DNA from: Ascidiella aspersa
Taxonomy: Eukaryota
Direction: 5' to 3'
DNA length: 64,000 bases
Assembly (NCBI GenBank): GCA_963924565.1
Contig: OZ004609.1
Span: forward strand, 24,056,001 to 24,120,000
Shown here: in pieces, positions 5,174-63,906 of the stretch
How the letters are laid out: each line of letters begins with the position of its first letter
How positions within the stretch are numbered: position 1 is the stretch's first letter
Program-made: the position numbers and the translations under genes
Notes under the pieces: generated by a model
What the model saw: only the letters and a program-made list of their open reading frames with translations
The model's database searches: none
Told to the model about the DNA's origin: nothing

Positions 5174-8100
5174 TCACACATGACACAATTTTAACAAATA
5201 ATTAGCGTTTACGGTAAACTTAGATGCATTTTTAAAACCATTATTCGTAAAGTTAGAATTTCTAAAATCAATGTCTTTATTCGCAACAGAAATCCTTGTC
5301 AGAAAATACCAAACGGCATCTGCATCAATTTTGATAAGGTTAGTGTAAAGTTTAACTGCATCGTTTTGCAACTCCTTATCACAATCTGAACTCAGGTACT
5401 CCCAAGATGCCAGTAACACATTATGAAAGTGGTCAAAGGTTATATGAATGTTGAGGAGTAGTGGGCCCAATTTACAAAGAACGTTATGCAAAAGTTTAAA
5501 AAGAGTTGAATGATGATACACAAGTTTAGAGGAATTAGATTTCATAGAAAGAGATTTTGCAGTGCTTGATTTGATCAATTTTACAAGTTGCGGAAGTACA
5601 TCTTTGGTGAAGCGTCTCCGAATAAAATCGCCGGCTGCATTAGTCATGATGCAAACCACATCAAATGAATAGGACACCACCTAGTATATATATTAACACA
5701 GGTAAAGGTAAAGTTTTAAAGCTAAATTGGGTAATGTGAATCTCTATAGTTTCTATATAATCAAACTATTTATATTTATATTGTCTACAAAGTTATAGCA
5801 TCCTGATTATTTGTACGTATAAACTAAAATTTATAATAGTATTATAAAAATTAACCATTAAAGCGCCCATATTATCACCTGCAATTCAGTGTCAGTAAAG
5901 CGAACCATCAGAGGTGACCAAAGTTTGTGCACCAAAGGTAAGAGTATGTTTTCATGTCTTTTCAGAGCTGAAATACCCTCAAACAAAATCTCCATAACCA
6001 GAAGCCGAATTCTTGGATTTTCATTTGCCATGAGATTACAACATCTCTCCATTACACATTGTACCACCTGAATTTCTGCAGGGGTTTTTGGTTCTGTATC
6101 ACTTTCATCCACAATTGGTTCATTGTCGATTTTAGCTTGATTATCAGTTTCGTCCTCACAACTGTCTTCAAAGTTTGTTGAGGCCAGTTTGTTCTTGTGG
6201 AGTTCTAACAAGGAGACCAATACATCTTCCGGTAAAAGTTTAAAACTAGTTTCAGTTGTTTTATGAGACGGGGGTTTTTCAACAGACATGTCCAATTTAA
6301 ACCAATTCTTTATTGATTTCACAAGTGTGAGCAAAACATAAAGAAATGCCAATAAATGTTTATGCTGTTGTCGATGTAAATCCAAAGCGTCAAGAACCTC
6401 AGTAATGCTGTCCCGGATTAAATAAAACACAGACTTATCACTGTGCAAAATCATTGCTTGTAGAACAGTTGAACATCTGAAATTAAAACACTGGAAACTT
6501 AAATTGTGAATAGTTTTAAAAAAATAACTAGAAAAAACATAGTCTACAATCGGTGGGTTGCATAAGCTGTCCTAATAACAGCAGCATAAAAAACAAAGCA
6601 ATTTAAAATTATCTAGACGAATTTAGCAGAATAAGTAATAAATACCTGGGAAATAAAGAAATGTGATGAAGCTGGATGGAGATGGTGCTTACTAAGTAAT
6701 CAGCATTTTGACAAAGCAGCATAGACACATTGTTATATTCACAATTTTTTGCTATAGCTTGAAGTGAACTAACTGCACAGCTCGATACCATCAAGTTAGT
6801 GTCTAAAACTTTTTCCAAAACAGGGTAAAGAGCAACAATCAAATTTGGGCGAAAATGTAAACCCAATACTTGAGAAAATGTTGAAATTGCCTCAATAAGT
6901 ATGCAGGCCAATAAGACATTGCTTTTAATTGTGAGTGGTGAGACTTTCCTGCTTGTAGCAACACTTTTATCGATAACACACACACTGTTATTTGGTCTCC
7001 ATGAATGGTTAGTTAAAAGGTAGTCAGATTCGAAACCAGTAACCAAATACCAATTCTCTGTAGAAGTGTAAACTTCCAACAAGTTAGAAATCAAAGTTGG
7101 CAAGTTTTGTGTATCATGGCGATTAAGTGTTCCCAAAAGAATCTCATTTAAAAGAAGAACAGCTTCAATCTTTGTGCTTTCGAGTGTGTATGACTGGTAT
7201 AACAAATCAAACATGACATCTATCTCCCCATACTGACCTAACAAACGACAAATTTTTATCAAAGTTGTAACGATGGATAAGTCTGTAAAGTTTTTGAATA
7301 CCTTTTTAAAATGCCAATTAGAAAATTGACCATGAAACATTGGTGCTTGTAGTGAATTGTGTTGGACCGCAAGGGGAGTAATACCATCTGTTTCAGCAGA
7401 ACTTGAAACATCAACTTTAAAACAAAACATCAGGGCATTTAAGAGTTTCTCAATCTGGATTGAAGAATAAAATAATGGTTTTAGATTGGATTTTAACACA
7501 GACAAATAGCCAAGCATTAGTTGTAAAGATTTAACTTTGTCATCATCTGAAAAGCGGATAAGGTTTTTCGGCAAGTTGTTGCAATGGTTAAATAATAAGT
7601 CTTCTACAGTGTCCTTCACTTGTTGTGGCAACTCTAATCCGATCAATGAAATTGCTGATTGGCTGGCTTCTGAAACTGATGGTTGCTCATCATGTAGTAA
7701 CTGTAGTATGCCCTTTAGTAGCGTTGCAACACAATTTGGTAATGTGTTAGTACAAGAAAACAATACGTCTTTACAAAATGAGACCAACGCCAAGCGCACA
7801 TAACCGTTTGGGTTTTGTGAAACAGCAATTATTCGTTGTAGCACAATCTCAACCTTTGAGGCCACACTTTCAACCCATTTATCATCCCTTATTTTTCTTA
7901 AATGTTCAAGTTGTTTTATTCCCTTGAAATTAATTTCATCAGTTAAGCAACGGAATTCCTTGTTTGAAGATATAGCGATGGACTTATCCCCAAGAACAAC
8001 ATCTAGGCACGTTGAAACAACCTTCAATGCTTTGCATTTGACTGTATGGCCCAACTTCTGTTCACCCAACAAAACCTTTGAAACACCAGATAAAATTCCC

Positions 8101-8723
8101 GGCATAAGGGAGCAGAAACAATCACCAATGAGCAGCCCTAAAAGATCTTTTTCATTTTCCAACATATTATGACAGTATTCCGGACTCAAGATGTGTAACA
8201 ATACGGACAATGCTGCAATCTTAACAGGTCTGTGGTCATGTAGCATGGCATCAAGGCATATTGTGACCAAATGGCCTAGTAGCGGCAAGTTTCTAAAAGA
8301 ATAAAAGTTTTTCCAAATAGTTGCTATTCCTTGATTTACTAACTTATCAATGCACAAGAGTGTTGAAAGAACTAGTTCCTCACTGCCAGATAGTTTAATA
8401 GTGCCATCCTGAGGATTGGATATGCATAACAGCAATGCCTTAACTATGTCATCCACAAGATTCCATTCTTTTACATTTGACTTAGTAAATACTTCATTAA
8501 GGCATTTTTGTGCCTGAATAATCTGTTCTTCTTTACTTAAACCCTTTTGCAAGATGATGCGCAAGGGGAATACAAGGTATTCATGTAAATTTTGAATGAT
8601 ATTCGAGTCAAATATCTTGATTAAGTTTTGAAGTTGAACCATAGACTTCACATTTTGTGTTTTCATAACCTCAACACAAACCGGCCTTAAGACAGAAAAT
8701 GCAGATTTATCATCAGAATGCAT
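5174..8723 (-). CDS. TTI1: TELO2-interacting protein 1 homolog (TTT complex, HEAT repeats), 3 coding exons, ~1060 aa
   Basis: Exons 8723-6646, 6476-5879, 5680-5174 join with GT-AG introns (3183 nt). Motifs AFSVLRPVCV, LHEYLVFPLRIIL, QNADYLVSTIS, LLPLVHKLWSPL, GDFIRRRFTKDVLPQL and DADAVW are characteristic of TTI1. A probable 5' UTR intron runs from a donor at ~9320 to an acceptor at ~8757. Confidence 0.92.
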
Positions 8724-46000: not shown

Positions 46001-49000
46001 TTGTAATAATCTTGTTTTGGTTAATCCTGTTTCGTTTTGTTTTGTGATTTTATTCGCTCTTGCCGATTCTTCCTTAGTGGTATTTGGGTCATTGTTTTGG
46101 GGATCAAAGGGGGTAATTTGACAGTTTAGAGGTGATGTTTAAACATTGGATAGCAAAAAAGTAGTATCGGCCTTTCCTATAAATATTCATATAAATGCAA
46201 ATATATGTAAGCCATTTTAGCGAGTTTATCCATTACCTAATTGACTTTCTTTAATTTTTGATAATGAAAAGGTGTTCAAACAAACTTGTTAGTATGAAGG
46301 TCGCCATGAATTAATAAAAAACTATTTGTATTTTGTAGAACATAAATCTAAATAAAGATGTGCTGCATTTTCTAAAAATATTAACCCGTTTAAAGAAACT
46401 GATTGCGCATTGAAACAATGCTAATAATTGTATGGGCTTCGGTCGAACTTTTTTTTTTGCAAAAGCTTCCAATTATTCAACTTGCAACTTCACGATTTCA
46501 AGCGTGTTGTCCCGAACTTTTCGTCCTAATGTTAAAGCGGCTTCTCGTTCCTTCAGGCGACATCGAGCAAGAGGTTCAGGAGCAGAACGACATCAACCGC
46601 TCGGTGCGCAACATGCAGAACGCAATGATCAAACTCAACACGCTACTCAACAAGGAAAAGGGTGTACAGGAAAACCTCGAGCAGGGAAACGTGCTTACCG
46701 AGAACGAGTTCATGCTCGAACTGCGGGTGAGTTGCTCGCTCTTTTGGTTAATGCGTATAAATTTTATCCTGACGATCGTTTGTGGCAATCTTACGCACGC
46801 CACGGATTCTTTCGATTTTTTTAATGAGGTTTGAACCTTCCCATTTTTTTTACGTTTTCGTGCGCTGGTTTAGTGGAATTTGCGTTATACTGGATGTTTC
46901 GGAATATTTGGATAGTAACCTATTCACATCTTTATATCTCTTTTAGTTTGACCTCACTGAACTATTGCTTACGAGGTCTATCGCGTATGCTTTGCTATAT
47001 ATCGCAATCAGTAATTCTTTGGTATATCTGTAGTTTAACCTTTAAAAACGTATATTAAGTTTAAACATGAAATAACAATTAGATTAAATCTAATAAAATC
47101 TTACATGGCCGTGTGTTGTCAGCTTACGAAATGCATAACTTCTTACAGGAAGCGGAACTCGAATCGATCCAGATGCAAGCCAAACTCGATTCGCTGAGAG
47201 AAGAAAAGGAAAATTTACTCAACAATCTTATTGAGGCTGAGTACGTACACTGAGGAGTGACAGAATGAAACACAAATAATAAATATGATTCGAGGCGGGG
47301 TATTGTAGTTACCATAAAAAATGGTTGGACCAGAGCTTTGGGATATCCAGCGAGTGATAAATAATAAGTATTCGAGCTTTAAGATAAAAAAATAATCGAA
47401 TGGGGCGGTCTTGTACGCTTTGTCCACACAAATTTGGACAAACAAGTAAAACTGAAAAATTAACAAAAAAATTAACAAAGTTTAAGATTAGACGTTTATT
47501 AGAAAGAATATATTATACCCCAAGCAGCCTTTTTGGTTCGAATAACAGATAAATACATACAGTGTAAAGCTATCATTTTCATAGAAATAATAAACTGAAA
47601 TAAAACTTATATACTTTAGTTGAAATCTGACCTTGCACTTTAAAATCAAGTTTTAAGGTCCGTCTTATACCCGTTTAACTATAGATTCAAGCAAAACCAC
47701 AAAGGTTGTAAAAGAGATCCAAAGCGTTTAACTATAGCGTTGAACTCACACAACTTTTTCACAGACGTCAGATAATGCTTTGGGAAAAGAAAACGCAGCT
47801 GGCAAAGGAGACGAGAGCCGCTGTGGACTCTGAGGTCGGCCAGGGAGAAATGCGAGCCATGAAGGCGGAAATACACAGGATGCAGGTATCCCGTTTACTC
47901 TTTTTTTCTCGGAAATGCGCGAGCGGACCTTTTTATATTAAACCTACATTGCTGTTTTTGTTTTATGCTGGAAAACAAAATACTAATTGTTAGTAAATCG
48001 TAAAAACAATACATTTTGAATTAACGCAGATGCATAAAAGATGTCAATATAAACTAGCGTAAATTTATTATTTTTATATTTCACTAACTGGCTAAGTTGC
48101 GCTGTAAGGACAAAGCTTAAGGTGAATAGAAGGCAAATACAGTTTTCTTTATCTTAAAACAAATGTTGCGACTTGCGATGTCTTTGGCAGGTGCGCTACG
48201 CTCAGCTCATGAAGCAGCAGGACGTGATGATCCGTGAGATGGAACAGGTCGTATCACGGCGTGAGACGATCGTGACGCGCGGAACGGCCCAGTCGAAGCT
48301 GGATCGCAAAACCCCAACCAAGGGAGCGTTCCAAAAAAAGCTACAGGACCTTAAGAAGAATATTAAGCACACGCAAAAGGTAATGTGTATTTTAGATGAC
48401 TTGTCAGTTATTTGTTTCTTAATTAATAAACTAGAAAAGTTACTCGACTTCGCCTTTGAGGTAATATAGCTTTCGGGACAAATGTAGATCTTTGTTTCTG
48501 ACAAGCTTAAAGTAATAAGCAGGTTAAAAACGATTCAAAATTCTTACTTTTAAGAAGTAATCTTTAAAATTTACGTTTGTTAAACATTGTGTTAAATCTC
48601 ACTGTTAGTATTTCGGTGAGGGTAGACTATGTTTTTTTTTTTTTGGTAAACTGTACAAACAAATTCAGCTGGCTTTTGAAAAAACTAATCCACACTTTTT
48701 ATTATTTTTACGCTTAAACAACAAAATAGAAAGAATACAAAATAGCTCCTATTAAAAAGGTTGCGAGGTTTCCAGAATTTAGAGCACAGATATACTCGGA
48801 ATGTTTTATCGACTTGATCATAAAAATAAACATAGAAAGCGTCGGTAATGTCTTTGCATACTTACCACGGTAACACGAACCACGCACATAACAGTAAGCA
48901 ATTTAACATATCATGGTCAACACTTCAAACATTGATAACCCGTTAAATCATTATTCACCGTTGCGCGTCACAGATGGCTGCCGACTGTGACGACGACATA

Positions 49001-55345: not shown

Positions 55346-58300
55346 ATGTCTTACAATCTGTATCCTAACGTTAAAGATGTAGCTCCTGATGCAGGAGGTA
55401 AGTGGGATAGTGTATTTTGCTAGTTGGCAAAACATTTGGTAAAATATAACAAAGTTTGGCGCTGGTATAGAATCCTACCACATTTATTTTAGCAGTAACG
55501 AAACAAGTTGTCAAAGTTGAAACTGCAAGGGAGGCATAAAAAAACCCAAACGCTAACTCTCACCCAAACCCAAATATTGTTAACAATATAAACCCCAGTC
55601 GAAAATGTGGTAGGATTCCAGACCAGCGCCCAAAGTTTTAAAAAATCATTGCAGTCAGCGTGTTTTGTTCTCGGTGAAACGCAACTTGATCCAGACATAC
55701 GCGACTTCGGTCGCACTACAATAAACTGCAATTATGCAAACGTGTAGTTTTGAATGCCTTACCAGTATTGTTTTGAACCTCTTATGTTGGATAAATAAAG
55801 TTGTCAGGAGACTGTAATGTGTGATACTCAGTTGTGTGTTTAACAACCCTCTCCGACGACGTGGATTTTGTTAATGGCCAATGCCGTTTAGAAACCAATC
55901 GATGCCCTGGCATAATTCCTTAACAAACTAGGCTCCGCGGTTTTACTTCGACAGCCCCATTATTGCGAGTTGTGAATGCATTTCGAAACTACAAGGAACT
56001 GAACCCTGTAAATTCGTGTCACCAGTGCACAGGCGCGGATCTAGGATTTCAGTTTGGGGAGGGCCATGGATTTTTTTCAGATATGACGTCACAAAAGTAT
56101 ACCATTGCGTGACGTCATAATTCAGGTAAAAATAACATCGGCTGGACGAATAAACTAACTCCTGTAAAATAACGCGCAAAACAGACCTTTTGAAAGCACG
56201 AAAAAGTAATAAGGTTAGCCTCTACAGTGAGCCGGTTTCCTAGTTTGACCCGATATGAAGAATATCGCTGAAAGACGCTACTATGTCTATTGTCTACACA
56301 TCTTGCGTTTTCCCGAAAAGGCGAGAGCAACCGCACATGCCACCAAAAAGCGCCGAGGCCACGTCGCAATAAAACCATAGCGCTGTCTGCTGCGGTCAGC
56401 TGTGGTTCTTTCACGACACTTCTCTCAATTTTTAAGTTACTGTAGTTGGTTTTTGCCAAATAAGGTTGCTGAAATAAGCAAAACTTTATGCAGATTTATT
56501 CCTAACATTGGATAGGTTATTCAAATCCTTACACAATGGTCGGCAACCTTTGTATAGTAGTCGCGGGCCAAAAGCAAACTCAAAAAGGTCTCTGCGGACC
56601 GCACAACATATATTAAATGATATTTTGTGTTATTACAACTTAATAACAATTGTGAATCAGGTGGGCCTCGGATTTTTTTGCACTTTTGAAACGTGTTTAT
56701 AATTACTTTTAAGGAGGCAGTAAAATCTTGGCGCAAATTCGCTGAAAAAGCGTATGCTTGGTTTAAAATTCGAGTCCACACGCCGTCATCCCCCTACTAC
56801 TATTAAAAAAGTGTAATAAAACTACTTTAAGAAAACGCGATAAATTTTATAGTTAATCTATTTTAGTGTTAACCATTCGGGGCACACCTGGCGAGCGAAG
56901 CGAGGGCGATTTTTTTGGTATACCGGTATTTCTTTTAAATTTCTTGTTTTTGTTACATTTAAAAAAAATGGGTAAAAAATATTTGTCGATTATGTTTGAA
57001 TACGTTTTCCGTTTGTCCGCGACGAATTTCGCATTTACACACTTAAAATAGTCAAAAAGTATTTAAAATGTGTCCAATTTGTCAAAGAGGCGGCGGGCCG
57101 GATGAAGTATATTGGCAGGCTGGTTCTGATACAGATTTGCATTAACAACAAAAAAGCTTTTAATTGCACTTGGATTTAAGTTAGTTATTAAATAGTCGAG
57201 GTCAGCGTACGGTCACTTAAGCCGTCTCTGCAAATCTGAAAAACGCCGCTTTGCGCGATTGCGCGAAACGAATTTTGTACATCTTTTTTAGTTTGGGGGG
57301 GCCATGGCCATATCGCCCCCCCCTAGGTCCGCCCCTGCCAGTGCGGCAATTCAACCAACGCCAAAATAATGTTTTCCCGCACAACAACTTACATTTTTTG
57401 CCCGCAGTCGACTATGGGAAGTCGGTAAGCGGAATGTACACAGCTTTGACCGATGCCGAGCAGCTGGAACTCAAGATTGACGTTGACCAGCCCGGACGCT
57501 TCCAACAAGCCCTTAAAGTGGTCAGCGGGACGCTCAAAGCTTTAAGCAAGCCAAAATGGTAACCGAGTAATGCTTTAAGCAAGCCAATTTTAGATAAATT
57601 AAATCCGTTTACAGGTTTTCTGTAAATAGTATAAGCATGTTTATTTGAGTATGGAGAATGTTTTTCATGCAAGCAGGGCTGCAAAGTGGTTTAATAATAA
57701 CGTCTCCCCAATAACGGAGTCACTGCGAACCTTCGTATCCGACTCCGGCCAAAAAATTGAACCTGAACCCGAGCCCGGTCAAGTGTGCGATTTCGTCGAG
57801 TCCCTACTCCGGCTTCGACTCCGTAACCCAGAATGCAAAACATAAGAAATATTTATTTGGAATATACAAGGCGCAAACAATATTTCTGGACTTGCGCATG
57901 CCTACGCTTCATTATTGCGTTATTCTGTAAAATGCGATAACCTGCGAATAGCACTGTTAACCAGAAACCCCCTTGCGAAACGCATTAATCGACCGTATTG
58001 TGTCCACGGCGCTTCTCAGAACTGTGTAGGCTTTTTCCGTGGAAATGCCGTCAATTGTACCCACGAGTAAAAACACCAACAAGCACCTAACTCGAAACTG
58101 TTCTTTTTAGGAGCGGAAAGGCGACGACCGCCTTTTTTACGACCTACCTCGACAGAGCAGTCTATAACCAGGAAACAGGGGCTCTCACCGCTCAACTTGC
58201 CGTCTCGCTAAGCGACGGGGGCAAGAGGGAAGGCTCCATCGACGCGGTGGCGCGCAGGAATACGCGCGGCGGGCCTTCTTTCGACGTGACCATCAAGATC

Positions 58301-61300
58301 GAGTCGGCCACGTTCGTCTACAAAGGCGTGACGCGAAAGAGCCAGGTGACATTTGCGGTTCACGCCCCCGCGTTCCGTCTCCGCCTCCTTTTTCCTGTTT
58401 GGGGCGACTTGGCGCGCATCGCCCCCGTCTGATACCCACGTTGCGGCTGTTTCTTTTACTTCGCCACACTCCACATTGCGTGCAAAGGGGGTTCGTGTTC
58501 CAGACGCGACGTGCGCCCCCTTCCCCGTAGGACGAAGTTACTTACCCCGTGCTGAACCCCTTTTACCAGCTCTGGCGCTTTTGTACGCACTCAGACAGGC
58601 CTCTTTCCGCTCGTATAGAGTTCCACTTTTTAAATGCTATTCAGTTCAAATAAAAAAGCTGTCTGTGGCCAGCTTTCAACTATCTAATATGTAAGGTACT
58701 TTGGATGTCAATGTTTGCAGTGCTTTTGTGTTTCGCGCAGTTTTTGTAGTTCCCTTTCCCGTTGTTCTGCCGCAACCAAGCTATTCCCCCTGCGCTTTTA
58801 TTAGGCACACACAGTAAAAATATCAAGCCCATTTAAACCTTGCCTTGAATGACGGAGCTCTTCGCTGAACCCGGTAAAACTTTCTGTTATTTGTGAACAG
58901 AAAAGTCTTCTCACGCAAAACAATTTTGTAGATTTGGGATAATATATACAGTAGGTAGCATTTTGATCTAATAGATATCCTTGATAAACCATAAATACGC
59001 TTTTCACTAAACTCTTCTGGACGTCACACGCTAAATGCTGGAAAGTTTACAGCAGGCAATAGTTAAATATCGTTATGACATGTCATAAACAGTTAAGTTG
59101 CACAAGCTTTTCTGCATGCCACTTTGTAACAAGATGGGTTATTTTTCCAAATAAAAATAAGTTTAGCGACACAAGTAAGAATATTTGGATGCAAATAGTT
59201 TTGAGTGGGTTAACTTTCCCCAACATTTACCTTGTAACCCTTAACCAGAGTTTACCTGCTGAGAACGTGTCCGCCGCCCTGGCAAAGTGCTTTGAATTGT
59301 ACTCGACAACTGTTCTCTGTTGTGCAGCACTATCGTGACATCAAGCTGGACATCGACTATGTGGACAAACTGACGGTTCCAGGCATCCAACTGAAGGACT
59401 TTAACTCCCCAGCATACGGCAATATGAAGGATCGCGAAGTTAACATCGTCACGGCCTTCACAGACGCTGGTCTTAAACTCAACTTTAATATGGACGACAC
59501 AACACAGGTACTTCAACCTAAATAATGATAATTGTTTAATAATCATAATTAAGTTAAAAACATCTGTCGTTCTCGAAAGAACGCAAATCCGCAGCTGAAA
59601 AAAGTCTAATCGTAGGAACAGCGAAAAAATTGCGTTTATTTTGTTTAAATTATCAAAACTTTTCAATGGTTGGTTGAATAAATTTGCTTAAAACGAACCG
59701 AGACGTAGTAAAACAATCGAAAATACCGTCTAAAACTTTCCGGTAGTTTCCGACCCGAAGGTTCCAAAGGGGTCACTAAGGCTTAAAAAAACAATAATAT
59801 AAACTAAAAATCTTGCTGTAGCAAAAAACCACCCCCAGTGTATAAGGGGCCAAACGCACCCCAAACAATTATGTTTATGGCATTTTAGGTCACAGACCGT
59901 GTTTATGACGTCACTATTCGCGTGTTTTTGATCAATGGCTGAAGCATAGCTTCTGTCAAATAGTCATGTCTAATAAAAATAAGAATAATTGCCATTTTTT
60001 GAGCCCCAGGACTCGTTTTGTAAAAGTTCTATGTAACAACATTCAAGATAATATAAATACATACATAAAATGACGGCTATACAATTTTTTATAATCTTTA
60101 TTTAGCTCATACAAACCTTTAATAAATTAATCAATATTGTGTTTTTTAGGTTAATGTAAAGGTTTGCTAGGTAAACCAATTTTTTATTTGTACGTTATTA
60201 CGGCACAAGAGAATTTCCTTCTGTGGGATCAAAACGTGGCAATGATGCGACTGGACGCTTAATCAGCTACTCAAGTTGGTTGGCGATACTGTAAAAATAT
60301 ATGTATATTATGATTTTAAAAATGTTATTTTTGAAACAAAATCGCGAGAACGAAAAGTTTTTGAACGAAGGGTTTTAGACTGATGACTGGAAAACCGGTA
60401 TATAACATGAAACATCGCTTGAAATTAACAGACCAGTATATTTAGTTGAATAAAAGCAGTCGCATCAGTTTGTGCGAAAAGAACAAGCAAGTCTTTGACG
60501 GCCAAATTATTGTACATAAAATGCAAATAGGTAAAAACGTCTTTCAAAGACAATCAATTTTTTATGATTTCCGGTTTTTGTGGTTTAATGCGTTTTATGC
60601 CGCGAGAGTTGCAAGTAAAAGGCCGTCACACCTCTTCGTGCGGTTTTAACCGCTTGCTTCGCAATCACGGTAACCGATTTTTTCTTTTCATGAAGGTTGA
60701 AGATCCAACGCCATACACACCGTGGTCGAAGGATGACATGGTCAAGGTGATGGATAAAAACTTCCAACAAGGCGCGTACTTCGACGACAGCATCTGGTGT
60801 CTCATGGCCACCCACCCGCCGGACGATCGATACATGGGGTTCTCGTTCGACTTTGAAAACAAGAGGGGTTTTGGCCTGTTTCTCGGGTAAATGAAACCCC
60901 CTTGATATACCTATTTAGTCATTTATCTCTGTTCACATTGCCGGTTCGCTTTTCCCCTAAAGCAGGTGCTTTGTCTTGTTTAAAGGGACCGGAGATATCT
61001 GTCTAAAATTTCAACAAGACAAAACATTATTTTACACGTTTTTTTTCCCAAACCTCAAACAGAGTTTAATACCTATCCATCTTGCCTGAAAACGGAAAAT
61101 TTTCGATATCATACTTTATCTCAAAGAGTTTGGGTGGCTTGAGAAAAATGTTTCCCGACGGCAGGATTTGTGTGGTTTGCTTTTGTATTATCATGTAGTG
61201 TAGATTAAATAGATGATAATTTAAAGGCTATTTTTTTTTAATTTTTAACATCTATCATAACAAAGCAACATTTTTTTTCCAATATTGAGTCACTGTCAAG

Positions 61301-63906
61301 TACAGAAAGTTTCGAACTATTTAAATATAAACAACTCCGAAAACCGAAAATTTTAACAATATTCGGGAGTGTCGTGATTGATCATAATTTTTGTCTTCCC
61401 TAGCCACAAGAGTTTCAAAGAAGTGACAAGCGACAATCCGAAAGTGCGGGCAAAGGCAAGCCGTCGCTTGCTCCACTATCTCGTACACGAGTGCGGCCAC
61501 TGCATGGGGCTGAAGCACCCCTTCGAAGAAGGCGAGTTGATTTAGGAAAAGCAATAAATCCTTTATGATTAATTACGCCAAACTATTTATCCACTAACGA
61601 GTGAATTTTGGCATTGATACTGGCCCTTCAAAGCATAGGGTTACTCAATTCACTAGGAAACGACTAAGTGGTTTAGGAAATTGAAAGAACCCCAAAAGTT
61701 GCCATTCAGTTAGATGCCACGGCTATATATTTATAAGGTGAATTTGCTTTATAAAGGTGAATTTTGCTTTTTTTTATAAGGTGAATTTTCTTTTAACAGA
61801 ACAACAATAGAGAAAATTTACAGTCGCCCTTAACATACGACAAACTGTATGTAAATATATCAATATTATGAAATCGCATGAATAGTGCGCATTAAGCCTA
61901 AATGCCTGTGTGTATGTCTATTTGTAATACAAATGACTTACTTTCCAAAATGACCAAAAGTTTTGTGTCGAACTTGATAATCTCACCAGGCACACAGTTT
62001 GGGAATCACCAGGCTAGTCGGTGATCGATCTCGCTGACATGTAACCGGGGCTACAAAATCCGTTTAAAACAACCGATTCCCGTGGCCGACCTTCACATTG
62101 CCGCGTAGTGCATTTTATCAGCGTAACCAAAATTTAGTGGATATACAACAATTCACTCATTTATCCCCATATCGTGGTTGGAACACTCATTTATCCCCAT
62201 ATCGTGGTTGGAAAATATTTCACTTTTACGATTTACAGTGTGCGGCTATATCAGTTTTAACCTTTGCCCCGAGTCGGTAAGCGAGTAGTCTCGAGTAGCG
62301 GTACTCCACTTCCGAGTCCAATGAATTGTCTGCTTGTGCAGGTAATGTAGACTCCATGAGCTGGATGAACTACGCCTGGAAGTATGACGGCTTAAAAAAG
62401 CGCAAAGCCGGCGACTTCTACAAAAACTTCAAATTCACTTTTTCCCGTGAAGAGCTCCTGATCCTTCGCCATCAGCCTGACAAGGTTTGTTTTAAAATGC
62501 TGCTGCACCAATACTGTTTACTCCATGTTGAACCTGGTGATAATAATTTCAGTATAGTTGTTCATTGTGATACCTTTGTACGGACTGAACGGAAAAAGTA
62601 CTATATTATTGCTTTAACTTAAGTGGTTGAAACAAGTAATTGCTATAGATTTCTGTAGACGTAAATTGCTATATATTTCTACATAAAGTCGAAAGCGTAG
62701 AGATTTCCCATAGAATTTTTTACTGGTACATACGTTACAAGATACTAACGCGATTGTTTGAATCGGATTGTTTAGACCAGTGGTTGTTAACCTTTTTCAT
62801 TGCTGCACCCCTTTTAAATCACCAACCAATTCTCGTACTCCCTTCTAAAATTGCTTAAATAACAAAACCATCGTAATTTTATTTATACACAAGTAACTAA
62901 TAACTCAATAAAGCAATACCGAAATGTGAGTTAGTTTTACATTTAATTGAACAAAGAACTAAATTACAGTAATACATTTTCCGTGTCTGACTTAACATTC
63001 CCATACCTCTTGGGGGTGCATGTACCCCTGGTTTAGACTGTGAATTTCAGTATCTTCCTAGCGTTTCGATCTTGAAGAAAATTTTCAAACAATGAACAAC
63101 GTAAACGAGGCTTGCCTTTTTTAGCTATTTAAGCAGGCCTACAAAGAGGCCAACGATGAGGTTTTTGAGTTTGTGCCGCCTTCCAAGTCGGCTCCTCCAG
63201 ACTACCTGGGCGGATACGGATATGAAGATGAAGGTTACGGAAAAGCCGGGTACGGTGAATACGATGACGAGGAAGAGTTGGAGGACGACGACGAACAATA
63301 CGGAGGATACCAGCAGGGCCCAGCTAAGAGGCGCAAAACAGAAGTGAAAGCCAGAGAGGTCGTGTTTGACATTAACACCAAGAAAACGCCCTACAAGAAG
63401 GTACGTTTTTTACGTAATAAAGCAATTTACTTGGGTACACTAGTCACTATGCATGGATCTGTAATGCAGCTTGAGGATAAATTACAAAGGCAAAAAGGTC
63501 GAGTATATTGACATCATCTTTATTGAGACGTTTCGATACGAGCTTGTATCACTGACACTGATGCAATTTATTATAAACAATTTACATAAATAAAATTAAA
63601 CGTTTACCAATTACGCGGTAATGTTGTTGTATGGTAGTACTAGAAGGTAGTTTGTCGTTAGCCCTCACGTTCGCAACTTCAATATAGATGTATTTGCACT
63701 CGGGTTATTCTGCCGCTGCAACAGGTTTAAATTTAAGTTTGCAGTTGGTGTAATGACATTTTAATATTTAAACCCAGGGCGACATCGTTGAACTGCAGAC
63801 CAGCCTGACGAACGTTGGAAAACTGCCAGCAAAGATCGAGGCCAATTTCGAGCCGGGTGGTGGAAATCTTACTGTCTATGTTACTGACCCGCAGGGTTAC
63901 GTTAAG
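55346..63906 (+). CDS. Metzincin-type zinc metallopeptidase resembling uncharacterised bacterial proteins; at least 9 exons, 495 aa within the window, 3' end beyond the window
   Basis: Exons 55346-55397, 57408-57558, 58111-58345, 59328-59507, 60696-60886, 61404-61531 (GC donor), 62342-62484, 63125-63400, 63778-63906 join in frame. HECGHCMGLKH at 61486-61518 (HExxHxxGxxH) is followed by the Met-turn SWMNY. There is no hydrophobic signal peptide. Confidence 0.85.
55458..55630. mobile_element. MITE family with internal telomere-like repeats, copy 3 (clearest ~26-bp TIRs)
   Basis: ggcgctggtatagaatcctaccacat / atgtggtaggattccagaccagcgcc. Confidence 0.8.
56030..57337. mobile_element. Non-autonomous hAT-like element (~1.3 kb) with a probable nested, degenerate hAT MITE at ~56533-57130
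   Basis: TIRs caggcgcggatctagg / cctaggtccgcccctg; TSD ccagtgca/ccagtgcg; gggccatgg at both subtermini. The inner element starts caatggtcggcaacc and carries gcgggcc motifs at both ends. Confidence 0.75.
61731..61788. repeat. Three imperfect tandem copies of ttata(a)aggtgaattt
   Basis: Directly visible triplicated 15-16-nt unit with short spacers. Confidence 0.85.
62154..62213. repeat. Perfect 30-bp tandem duplication
   Basis: cactcatttatccccatatcgtggttggaa x2. Confidence 0.95.
62778..63030. mobile_element. hAT-type MITE with a truncated right TIR
   Basis: Starts cagtggttgttaacc, ends gggggtgcatgtacccctg, and is flanked by a perfect 8-bp repeat gtttagac. Confidence 0.75.
63433..63551. repeat. 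Second, single-arm copy of the 21006-21230 family; hammerhead truncated (no CUGAnGA)
   Basis: gggtacacta...ggatctgtaa...aaaaaggtcgagta...gacgtttcgatacgagcttgtatca is shared with 21006-21117. Confidence 0.8.

Follow-up and report, generated by a model that had tools for sequence, protein, structure and literature searches.

A stretch of 64,000 nucleotides (nt) from the ascidian Ascidiella aspersa, here called the window (C3:24056001-24120000 of a 308 megabase (Mb) assembly, on a contig of 39 Mb), carries a gene for a metalloprotease of the metzincin type, the nearest relatives of which are, hemichordates apart, bacterial. The protease gene is a real, transcribed and spliced host gene, and we consider it likely that it goes back to one old transfer from a bacterium to a deuterostome, and that it has since been domesticated. 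Splice phases, a diverged second copy of the locus (the paralog) and RNA read depth further suggest, with slightly less assurance, that the protease is spliced onto a downstream phenoloxidase of the hemocyanin type.

Nine phase-compatible exons, together 1485 nt or 495 codons with no in-frame stop, were read on the + strand at 55346-63906, including the zinc motif HECGHCMGLKH and the Met-turn SWMNY, just as an initial annotation of this DNA had described them. Exons are given in window numbering, in which values above 64,000 run on into the adjoining downstream DNA; P0007 and P0006 are hemichordate homologs, and P0013 is a further homolog.

55346-55397, + strand: E1, putative, with the proposed ATG; AG/GTAAGT donor, phase compatible with E2
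57408-57558, + strand: E2, start of the N-terminal beta-barrel with VSGxY, LELKIDVD and VSG motifs; splice sites, and tblastn to P0007 28-65 and P0006 29-66
58111-58345, + strand: E3, remaining N-terminal domain, poorly conserved; open frame with fitting AG/GT sites and phases
59328-59507, + strand: E4, start of the catalytic domain with YRDIKLDIDY and TAFTDAG; colinear with P0007 residues 128-201
60696-60886, + strand: E5, catalytic core with PW, RYMGFSFD and RGFGLF; found by profile search, paralog 54% identical
61404-61531, + strand: E6, zinc site HECGHCMGLKH; GC donor AAG/GCGAGT at its end
62342-62484, + strand: E7, Met-turn SWMNY and FxFxFSxEELxxLRH motif; matched by a bacterial catalytic-domain profile (E 1.3e-8)
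63125-63400, + strand: E8, linker that contains an acidic, Gly/Tyr-rich and lineage-specific insert of around 45 amino acids (aa); 3' junction to 63778 in four RNA reads
63778-63906, + strand: E9, first strands of an Ig-like beta-sandwich; GT donor at its end and no stop, RNA junctions on both sides

The eight intervals between these exons all have fitting splice sites, in agreement with the at least eight introns counted before, but one of them, intron 6, is GC-AG and not GT-AG. Its donor is the only one that holds E6 and E7 in frame, a GT eight bases downstream disrupting it, and the GC-AG intron is plausible because the paralog carries a normal GT donor at exactly the same position and phase. 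At the other end of the gene, a trans-spliced start at E2 may take the place of E1. The insert of E8 has no counterpart in residues 345-390 of P0007 and is absent from the hemichordate and bacterial relatives, and the equivalent exon of the paralog gives only a weak match beneath it.

Some local features of these exons and introns deserve mention. E3, which gave no match to the homologs in tblastn comparisons, is the least conserved exon and has a GC content (0.60) well above that of the rest of the gene; the overlapping open frames on its opposite (-) strand resemble a by-product of this composition. At 63173-63340, the acidic Gly/Tyr-rich, low-complexity insert of E8 is followed by a basic KRRK stretch, and at 62150-62215, in intron 6, a unit of about 30 bases is directly duplicated, CATTTATCCCCATATCGTGGTTGGAA being read twice.

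Transcription was evaluated with one RNA sequencing run of the same species label, of which around 6% was read and placed on 63001-69000, yielding 38 reads. Four of these reads join 63400 to 63778 and three join 63906 to 65301, in both cases across a GT..AG intron, and the orientation of the mates corresponds to RNA from the + strand. These junctions confirm E8, E9 and the start of E10, and they are the spliced transcripts that had been named as a check on the prediction. Together with the colinearity of the exons with hemichordate proteins and with the bacterial profile matches, they argue that the gene model is not due to chance.

Because E9 terminates on a donor without a stop, the 495 aa are an incomplete protein and not, as first thought, the whole of it; further exons follow, and a likely phenoloxidase fusion had been overlooked.

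65301-65499, + strand: E10, remainder of the Ig-like domain; RNA junction from 63906 to 65301
65748-65806, + strand: E11; splice phases
65977-66255, + strand: E12, helical domain; matches the hemichordate C-terminal helical domain
66847-67036, + strand: E13, helical domain; matches the hemichordate C-terminal helical domain
67573-67705, + strand: E14, predicted linker; acceptor at 67573 fits the E13 donor
68147-68359, + strand: E15; acceptor at 68147 fits E14

E12 and E13 were assigned by eye and via the paralog. E10 to E13 bring the protease to the usual size of its family, 700-790 aa (here about 737-759 aa). Left unspliced, E13 would run into an in-frame stop at 67102-67104, after 759 codons, which is a normal family length; its donor, C/GTAAGA in phase 1, lies 22 codons ahead of this ancestral stop. 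The tunicate protein was searched exon by exon, and exons were strung together only to count codons and stops: the chain from E1 to E15 has 852 codons and no stop. Among the exons that come after E15, one reaches 38.6 bits with the Hemocyanin_M copper-domain model (cut-off 20.8), the exon at the CuB end scores 17.8 bits, and the Hemocyanin_C signal is weak.

A second, diverged copy of the protease-plus-phenoloxidase locus is found at C6:3275000-3295300, with an identity of 54% in E5 and HELGHTLGLVH as its zinc motif. When the 308 Mb genome was compared with a profile of the catalytic domain made only from bacterial sequences, there were exactly two matches, E7 of the window and the paralog. 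The two loci are colinear over about 20 kilobases (kb), including the phenoloxidase exons; the E13 of the paralog ends on a strong consensus donor with codon position and phase as in the window copy, and its E15 has the same acceptor phase.

Both tunicate copies have the extended zinc motif of metzincins, HExxHxxGxxH, and keep the three His and the Glu of this motif, the M-N-Y of the Met-turn (98 of 98 family members have this Met), and the F..F..E..RH motif; in all, some 35 of the 46 near-invariant columns of the family are kept in the tunicate sequence, and one near-invariant Trp is lost in both copies. The conservation of zinc ligands, catalytic Glu and Met-turn in the two copies argues for an active protease, which on the strength of these residues probably still cuts peptide bonds.

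Fold models were made for homologs of the window protein, namely the hemichordate protein P0007 (Ptychodera) and a bacterial catalytic domain. The Ptychodera model (predicted local distance difference test score 81, predicted template modelling (TM) score 0.82) has four domains.

Residues 25-135: beta-barrel
Residues 135-351: catalytic domain; closest to ADAM-8 (Z 10.8), archaemetzincin (Z 10.7) and ulilysin (Z 9.2), also to snake-venom and ADAMTS enzymes
Residues 372-507: Ig-like sandwich
Residues 511-685: helical domain

The catalytic domain superposes on ADAM-8 with a root-mean-square deviation of 3.7 over 168 aligned residues, and the bacterial catalytic-domain model alone has the same neighbours, weakly (Foldseek to ADAM-8, E 5.5e-3). 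Foldseek with the full 700 aa model was uninformative, being dominated by matches of the Ig-like domain to GH3 enzymes. Since the modelled catalytic fold matches metzincins and the Pfam models M10, M12B and M43 all stay below threshold, the family is, as judged from the models, a metzincin outside every described metzincin family.

Four known families were considered and discarded. With single exons as queries, Pfam returned only sub-threshold matches to the zinc motif. The matrixin model Peptidase_M10 (M10A) matched the zinc-motif exon alone, with 19.3 bits where 24 are required, and the exons have no switch of the PRCGxPD type. The best score for adamalysin/reprolysin (M12B) was 16.6 bits against 22.4, with 14-18 bits for the homologs, and there is no signal peptide. 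Astacins (M12A) bear the signature HExxHxxGFxHExxRxDRD and an SxMHY Met-turn; here the residues after the third His are PFEEG, and there was no Astacin Pfam match. Archaemetzincins (M54) bear HExxHxxGxxHC and a Cys4 structural zinc site; here a Pro comes after the third His, the phmmer comparison with 3zvs reached only an E of 0.61, and the structural Z of 10.7 is level with that of ADAMs. The lack of fit to known animal metzincin families thus stood up to these comparisons. No signal peptide was seen in the tunicate, hemichordate or bacterial N-termini examined, so the enzyme is probably intracellular, and we take E1 to E13 to encode a zinc endopeptidase, probably cytosolic and with four domains, from a metzincin family that has not been described before. 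Sequence searches of the PDB with E5 and E6 returned nothing useful, and a protein atlas searched with E5 alone gave scores of 0.85 at most, which is noise.

A profile of 64 positions built from E5 and the paralog, scored against each of 1.84 billion representative proteins, gave nine matches. Three are full-length hemichordate proteins annotated as 'uncharacterized', XP_070552437 from Ptychodera flava, XP_006815590 from Saccoglossus kowalevskii and XP_077978795 from Glandiceps talaboti; the Glandiceps and Ptychodera genes lie on contigs of 29 and 50 Mb. Four others are fragments of open reading frames (ORFs) on large ENA/JGI contigs: P0001 to P0003 carry the tunicate-type signature, from which other tunicates probably have the gene too, and P0009 is of the hemichordate type. 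The last two, P0004 and P0008, were set aside, as they match only 14-19 profile positions, repeatedly, and look like low-complexity noise. This profile gave no match for Ciona-type tunicates, vertebrates, cephalochordates or echinoderms, and the eukaryotes in these searches, in which no collection of eukaryote genomes was scanned, are represented only by hemichordates and tunicate-like ORF fragments. In tblastn comparisons, E2, E4, E5, E6, E7 and E9 align colinearly with full-length hemichordate proteins, with an identity of 34-44% in the conserved exons; the exon-by-exon comparisons were colinear with P0007, P0006 and P0013.

Using the Ptychodera protein and an 18-sequence profile, we retrieved besides hemichordates only bacterial or metagenomic matches, none of them with a Pfam domain. 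When one genome per GTDB species was scanned, relatives were present in 217 species from at least ten phyla (Chloroflexota, Actinomycetota, Pseudomonadota, Bacteroidota, Acidobacteriota, Gemmatimonadota, Planctomycetota, Cyanobacteriota, Myxococcota and Thermodesulfobacteriota). The best of them came from metagenome-assembled genomes (MAGs) of Anaerolineae (30% identity, E 1e-71), and cultured carriers include Maribellus, Streptomyces, Planobispora, Nonomuraea, Mesorhizobium, Simiduia and Brasilonema. Likewise, atlas clusters of 60-359 members, 87-100% of them bacterial, superpose on the whole hemichordate model with TM scores of 0.76-0.84. No Pfam, NCBIfam or PADLOC model matched the protease family. 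The earlier proposal that it parallels uncharacterised bacterial metallopeptidases, its motifs and domains following the same order from end to end, is therefore well founded.

In at least 19 of 80 bacterial loci, from several phyla, a small ORF lies directly upstream of the metallopeptidase gene on the same strand (for example L015:2161-2580, L017:2404-2814, L018:399-695 and L011:2593-2880). It encodes around 100 conserved residues ending in FGYG, in some loci with a lipoprotein-like or hydrophobic N-terminus, and has no Pfam match; its product may be a partner or an inhibitor of the metallopeptidase. With the query used, it was not found in the host genome.

A tree of 98 full-length proteins, computed by maximum likelihood (LG+G4, quick search; unrooted, shown with a midpoint root), places the three hemichordates in one clade (support 100) on a long branch (1.18). 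This clade is sister (91 in the Shimodaira-Hasegawa-like approximate likelihood ratio test) to an Anaerolineae-type clade (support 100) that includes Vicinamibacterales, Competibacteraceae and Maribellus, and under the midpoint root both fall within a starred set of 34 rows, the other members of which are bacterial. Exons 2, 3, 8 and 10-13 were left out of trees and placements for failed fragment alignment or poor conservation, mafft --addfragments having misplaced exons 2, 3 and 10. In FastTree analyses of single exons, E4, E5 and E6 group with hemichordates (0.91, 0.81 and 0.57), E7 groups with Anaerolineales and E9 shows no clear grouping. Each exon was also attached in turn to four alternative positions on a fixed reference tree of 49 taxa, for comparison of the log-likelihoods. 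A position as sister to hemichordates was best for all five window exons, with a summed log-likelihood difference of 21-29 units above the alternatives; for the paralog, it was best for three exons and within 0.7 units for the other two, with a summed difference of 20-32. Both animal groups also have a V-x-D-P-x-P-x-x-P-W stretch that is missing in bacteria.

The initial annotation had named confinement to a single animal lineage, and nesting of the animal sequences among bacterial ones, as support for a transfer. Confinement to one lineage does not hold, as full-length copies occur in three hemichordates, to which the tunicate exons place as sister, so that the acquisition is either older than tunicates or happened more than once; nesting is not provable on an unrooted tree. 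A bacterial origin is still probable, in that transfer is the most economical account of a family of bacterial type. In the scenario we favour, a bacterial donor near a subfamily that is now mainly found in Anaerolineae would have passed the gene to an early deuterostome, after which it would have gained introns, been ameliorated to host codon usage and been lost many times. It would persist in hemichordates as a stand-alone protein of 700 aa and in some tunicates as two copies, and in this tunicate lineage a duplication would have been followed by fusion to the phenoloxidase.

Several points weigh against a single old transfer and the gene model behind it. Whenever the animal sequences are monophyletic, a root can be chosen that makes them sister to all bacteria; with a long hemichordate branch and divergent tunicate exons, the grouping of the two may partly reflect long-branch attraction; one old transfer requires losses in echinoderms, cephalochordates, vertebrates and Ciona-type tunicates; and the absence from other eukaryotes derives from one 64-position profile and two word-limited searches, which may miss distant members. 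Codon usage shows no foreign signal, as the GC content at third codon positions of the protease (0.66) is that of the phenoloxidase exons and of another host ORF; since host exons share it, we rejected codon usage as a sign of foreign origin. RNA reads, which were placed on 63001-69000 only, support neither the GC-AG junction nor E1. The rooting problem and the host-like codon usage are also what would be seen if this were an ancient eukaryotic or metazoan gene of vertical descent, lost nearly everywhere, with transfer from animals to bacteria or none at all. We regard this as improbable: the gene occurs across the 217 bacterial species in several deep subfamilies, many bacterial carriers also have the conserved partner ORF, and with only two animal groups found, vertical descent would need very many independent losses. 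Hardly more probable are separate acquisitions by tunicates and by hemichordates, with related marine bacteria as donors, or a passage from one of these animal groups to the other. The patchy distribution and the weak grouping of E7 with Anaerolineales agree with this possibility, but the placements favour hemichordates over a bacterial sister by 21-23 units, the V-x-D-P-x-P-x-x-P-W stretch is common to both animal groups, and in P0009, which resembles the hemichordate proteins, homology begins where the tunicate E5 begins, hinting at a shared intron position. Contamination or misassembly, which the bacterial nature of the nearest relatives outside hemichordates might bring to mind, has a negligible probability given at least 12 spliceosomal introns, a host transposable element, RNA splice junctions, the 39 Mb contig, eukaryotic neighbours and the diverged copy elsewhere, and the case made against it from the start was correct.

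As for the organisation of the locus, none of the 38 RNA reads joins E13, E14 and E15, which counts against fusion; the alternative is a stand-alone protease that ends after 759 codons, next to a separate phenoloxidase gene or in a trans-spliced operon with it. Consistent with such an arrangement, the homology with the hemichordate C-terminus continues in frame beyond the proposed donor to the stop, and the hemichordate and bacterial proteins are themselves stand-alone, with 700-790 aa. Nonetheless, we hold two genes to be rather unlikely, because the paralogs agree in the codon and phase of a consensus donor and have a matching acceptor phase ahead of the phenoloxidase part, both loci are colinear over 20 kb, and RNA depth is present on E13, the predicted linker E14, E15 and the CuA exon, with none over the 400 base pairs (bp) past the would-be stop. 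It is also improbable that the protease module is catalytically dead, serving as scaffold or pro-domain only. Both tunicate copies have altered two family-invariant positions, with Gly for Asn in the zinc motif and Tyr for Thr three residues ahead of the first zinc His, and the window copy has new cysteines flanking the motif; but the zinc-binding and catalytic residues have outlasted a long divergence of the two copies, and the change from Asn to Gly restores the canonical residue of metzincins. If fusion to the phenoloxidase is real, the protease stands in cis with an enzyme of a class that is normally activated by proteolysis, and a testable new control of melanisation and of tunic-hardening chemistry would exist in the closest relatives of vertebrates. 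One conceivable, though doubtful, reading is a self-contained phenoloxidase zymogen in which the fused bacterial-derived protease would act as built-in activator or latency module, replacing a separate serine-protease cascade of the arthropod type, and in which the fusion would have been kept through duplication.

The gene is embedded in host DNA, with repeats in its introns and eukaryotic genes around it.

55455-55633: intron 1, miniature inverted-repeat transposable element (MITE)-like host repeat of 179 bp, 31 nt inverted ends, 90% complementary
63401-63600: intron 8, high-copy host repeat; word depth 13347, where single-copy DNA has about 76 (DNA run X1)
46403-46834: BRE1-type coiled-coil ORF
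5174-8723, - strand: TTI1 gene, single exon of 704 aa; Pfam TPR_TTI1_N, E 4.6e-73

A first look gave 1725 candidates for the intron 1 element in the genome, and the scored copies, on C1-C9, have identities of 70-81%; host MITEs in the introns are thus borne out for at least intron 1. In intron 9, at 64001-65200, there is a very high-copy repeat block (word depth 2000-9700 against about 76 in the same DNA run), to which some RNA reads of opposite orientation map, probably from copies elsewhere; the repeats of introns 8 and 9 reach 30-175 times the single-copy word depth. Of the neighbourhood with CCDC40 that had been suggested, the BRE1-type coiled-coil ORF is in agreement but leaves the identity as CCDC40 unproven. 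For the 704 aa TTI1 exon, no relative came up in a word-based search among 5.8 billion proteins, as would fit a lineage that evolves fast and has no proteome on deposit. Elsewhere in the assembly, the mitochondrial COX1 gene (C75:23317-24654) has AGA/AGG at conserved Gly positions (IFG, GGGDP, TVGGLTG), with TGA read as Trp and ATA as Met; this is the mitochondrial code of ascidians and marks the host as a tunicate. A stop-free COX1-like stretch of 71 residues on a nuclear chromosome (C7:30046519-30046731) is probably a nuclear copy of mitochondrial DNA.

Well-supported transfers from bacteria to animals are few and often disputed. This case combines introns, host repeats, RNA junctions, a large bacterial donor family and a second animal phylum, and therefore bears on the timing of microbial gene uptake by deuterostomes and on later loss; it also reveals a widespread bacterial metzincin family for which there is no Pfam or NCBIfam model. 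Known transfers from bacteria to tunicates are those of the cellulose synthase CesA, GH6-1 and rusticalin (PMC13390645, PMC10334666, PMC6339383), and no peptidase is mentioned among the tunicate transfer candidates surveyed in 2026 (PMC13390645). In the mainly open-access literature, we found nothing relevant on transfer of a metallopeptidase gene to hemichordates or on an ascidian phenoloxidase with a metalloprotease module. Rusticalin (PMC6339383) and Tuphoxin (PMC9395347) are different proteins, the latter, considered as a relative of the downstream part, being an alpha-type tyrosinase unrelated to the hemocyanin type. Like the gene described here, the known tunicate transfers are cases in which an enzyme gene of bacterial type has acquired introns and has its expression from a tunicate chromosome; they differ in enzyme class, and the protease is shared with hemichordates and is not tunicate-wide.

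Among proteases, the bacterial four-domain metallopeptidases (for example those of Maribellus sediminis, Streptomyces tauricus, Planobispora rosea and an Anaerolineae MAG; loci L011-L090) resemble the tunicate protein over their full length, in zinc site, S-F/W-M-N-Y Met-turn, F..F..E..LRH motif, lack of a signal peptide and a size of about 700-800 aa to the ancestral stop. They differ in an identity of only 25-30%, in having Asn for the tunicate Gly (HEIGHxFNLxH), in their lack of introns, insert and phenoloxidase, and, in many cases, in the upstream partner ORF that was not found in the host. The hemichordate proteins are the closest full-length relatives and the sister in exon likelihoods, and share the proline-rich stretch mentioned above; unlike the tunicate protein, they are stand-alone, with about 700 aa, keep the bacterial Asn in the zinc motif and have neither the E8 insert nor a phenoloxidase. 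ADAMs (M12B) and archaemetzincins (M54) offer the best structural matches for the catalytic domain of the homolog, and share HExxHxxGxxH and a Met-turn, but the tunicate protein lacks the propeptide cysteine switch, disintegrin or Cys-rich module and signal peptide of ADAMs, as well as the Cys after the third His and the Cys4 zinc site of archaemetzincins. Finally, the downstream part is comparable to the arthropod-type (beta-subclass) phenoloxidases of ascidians, such as Ciona CinPO, and to arthropod prophenoloxidase, in Hemocyanin_M, a weak Hemocyanin_C and no signal peptide; arthropod phenoloxidases are activated by separate serine proteases, whereas we know of no described hemocyanin-type phenoloxidase that bears an N-terminal metalloprotease module, as the one at this locus would.

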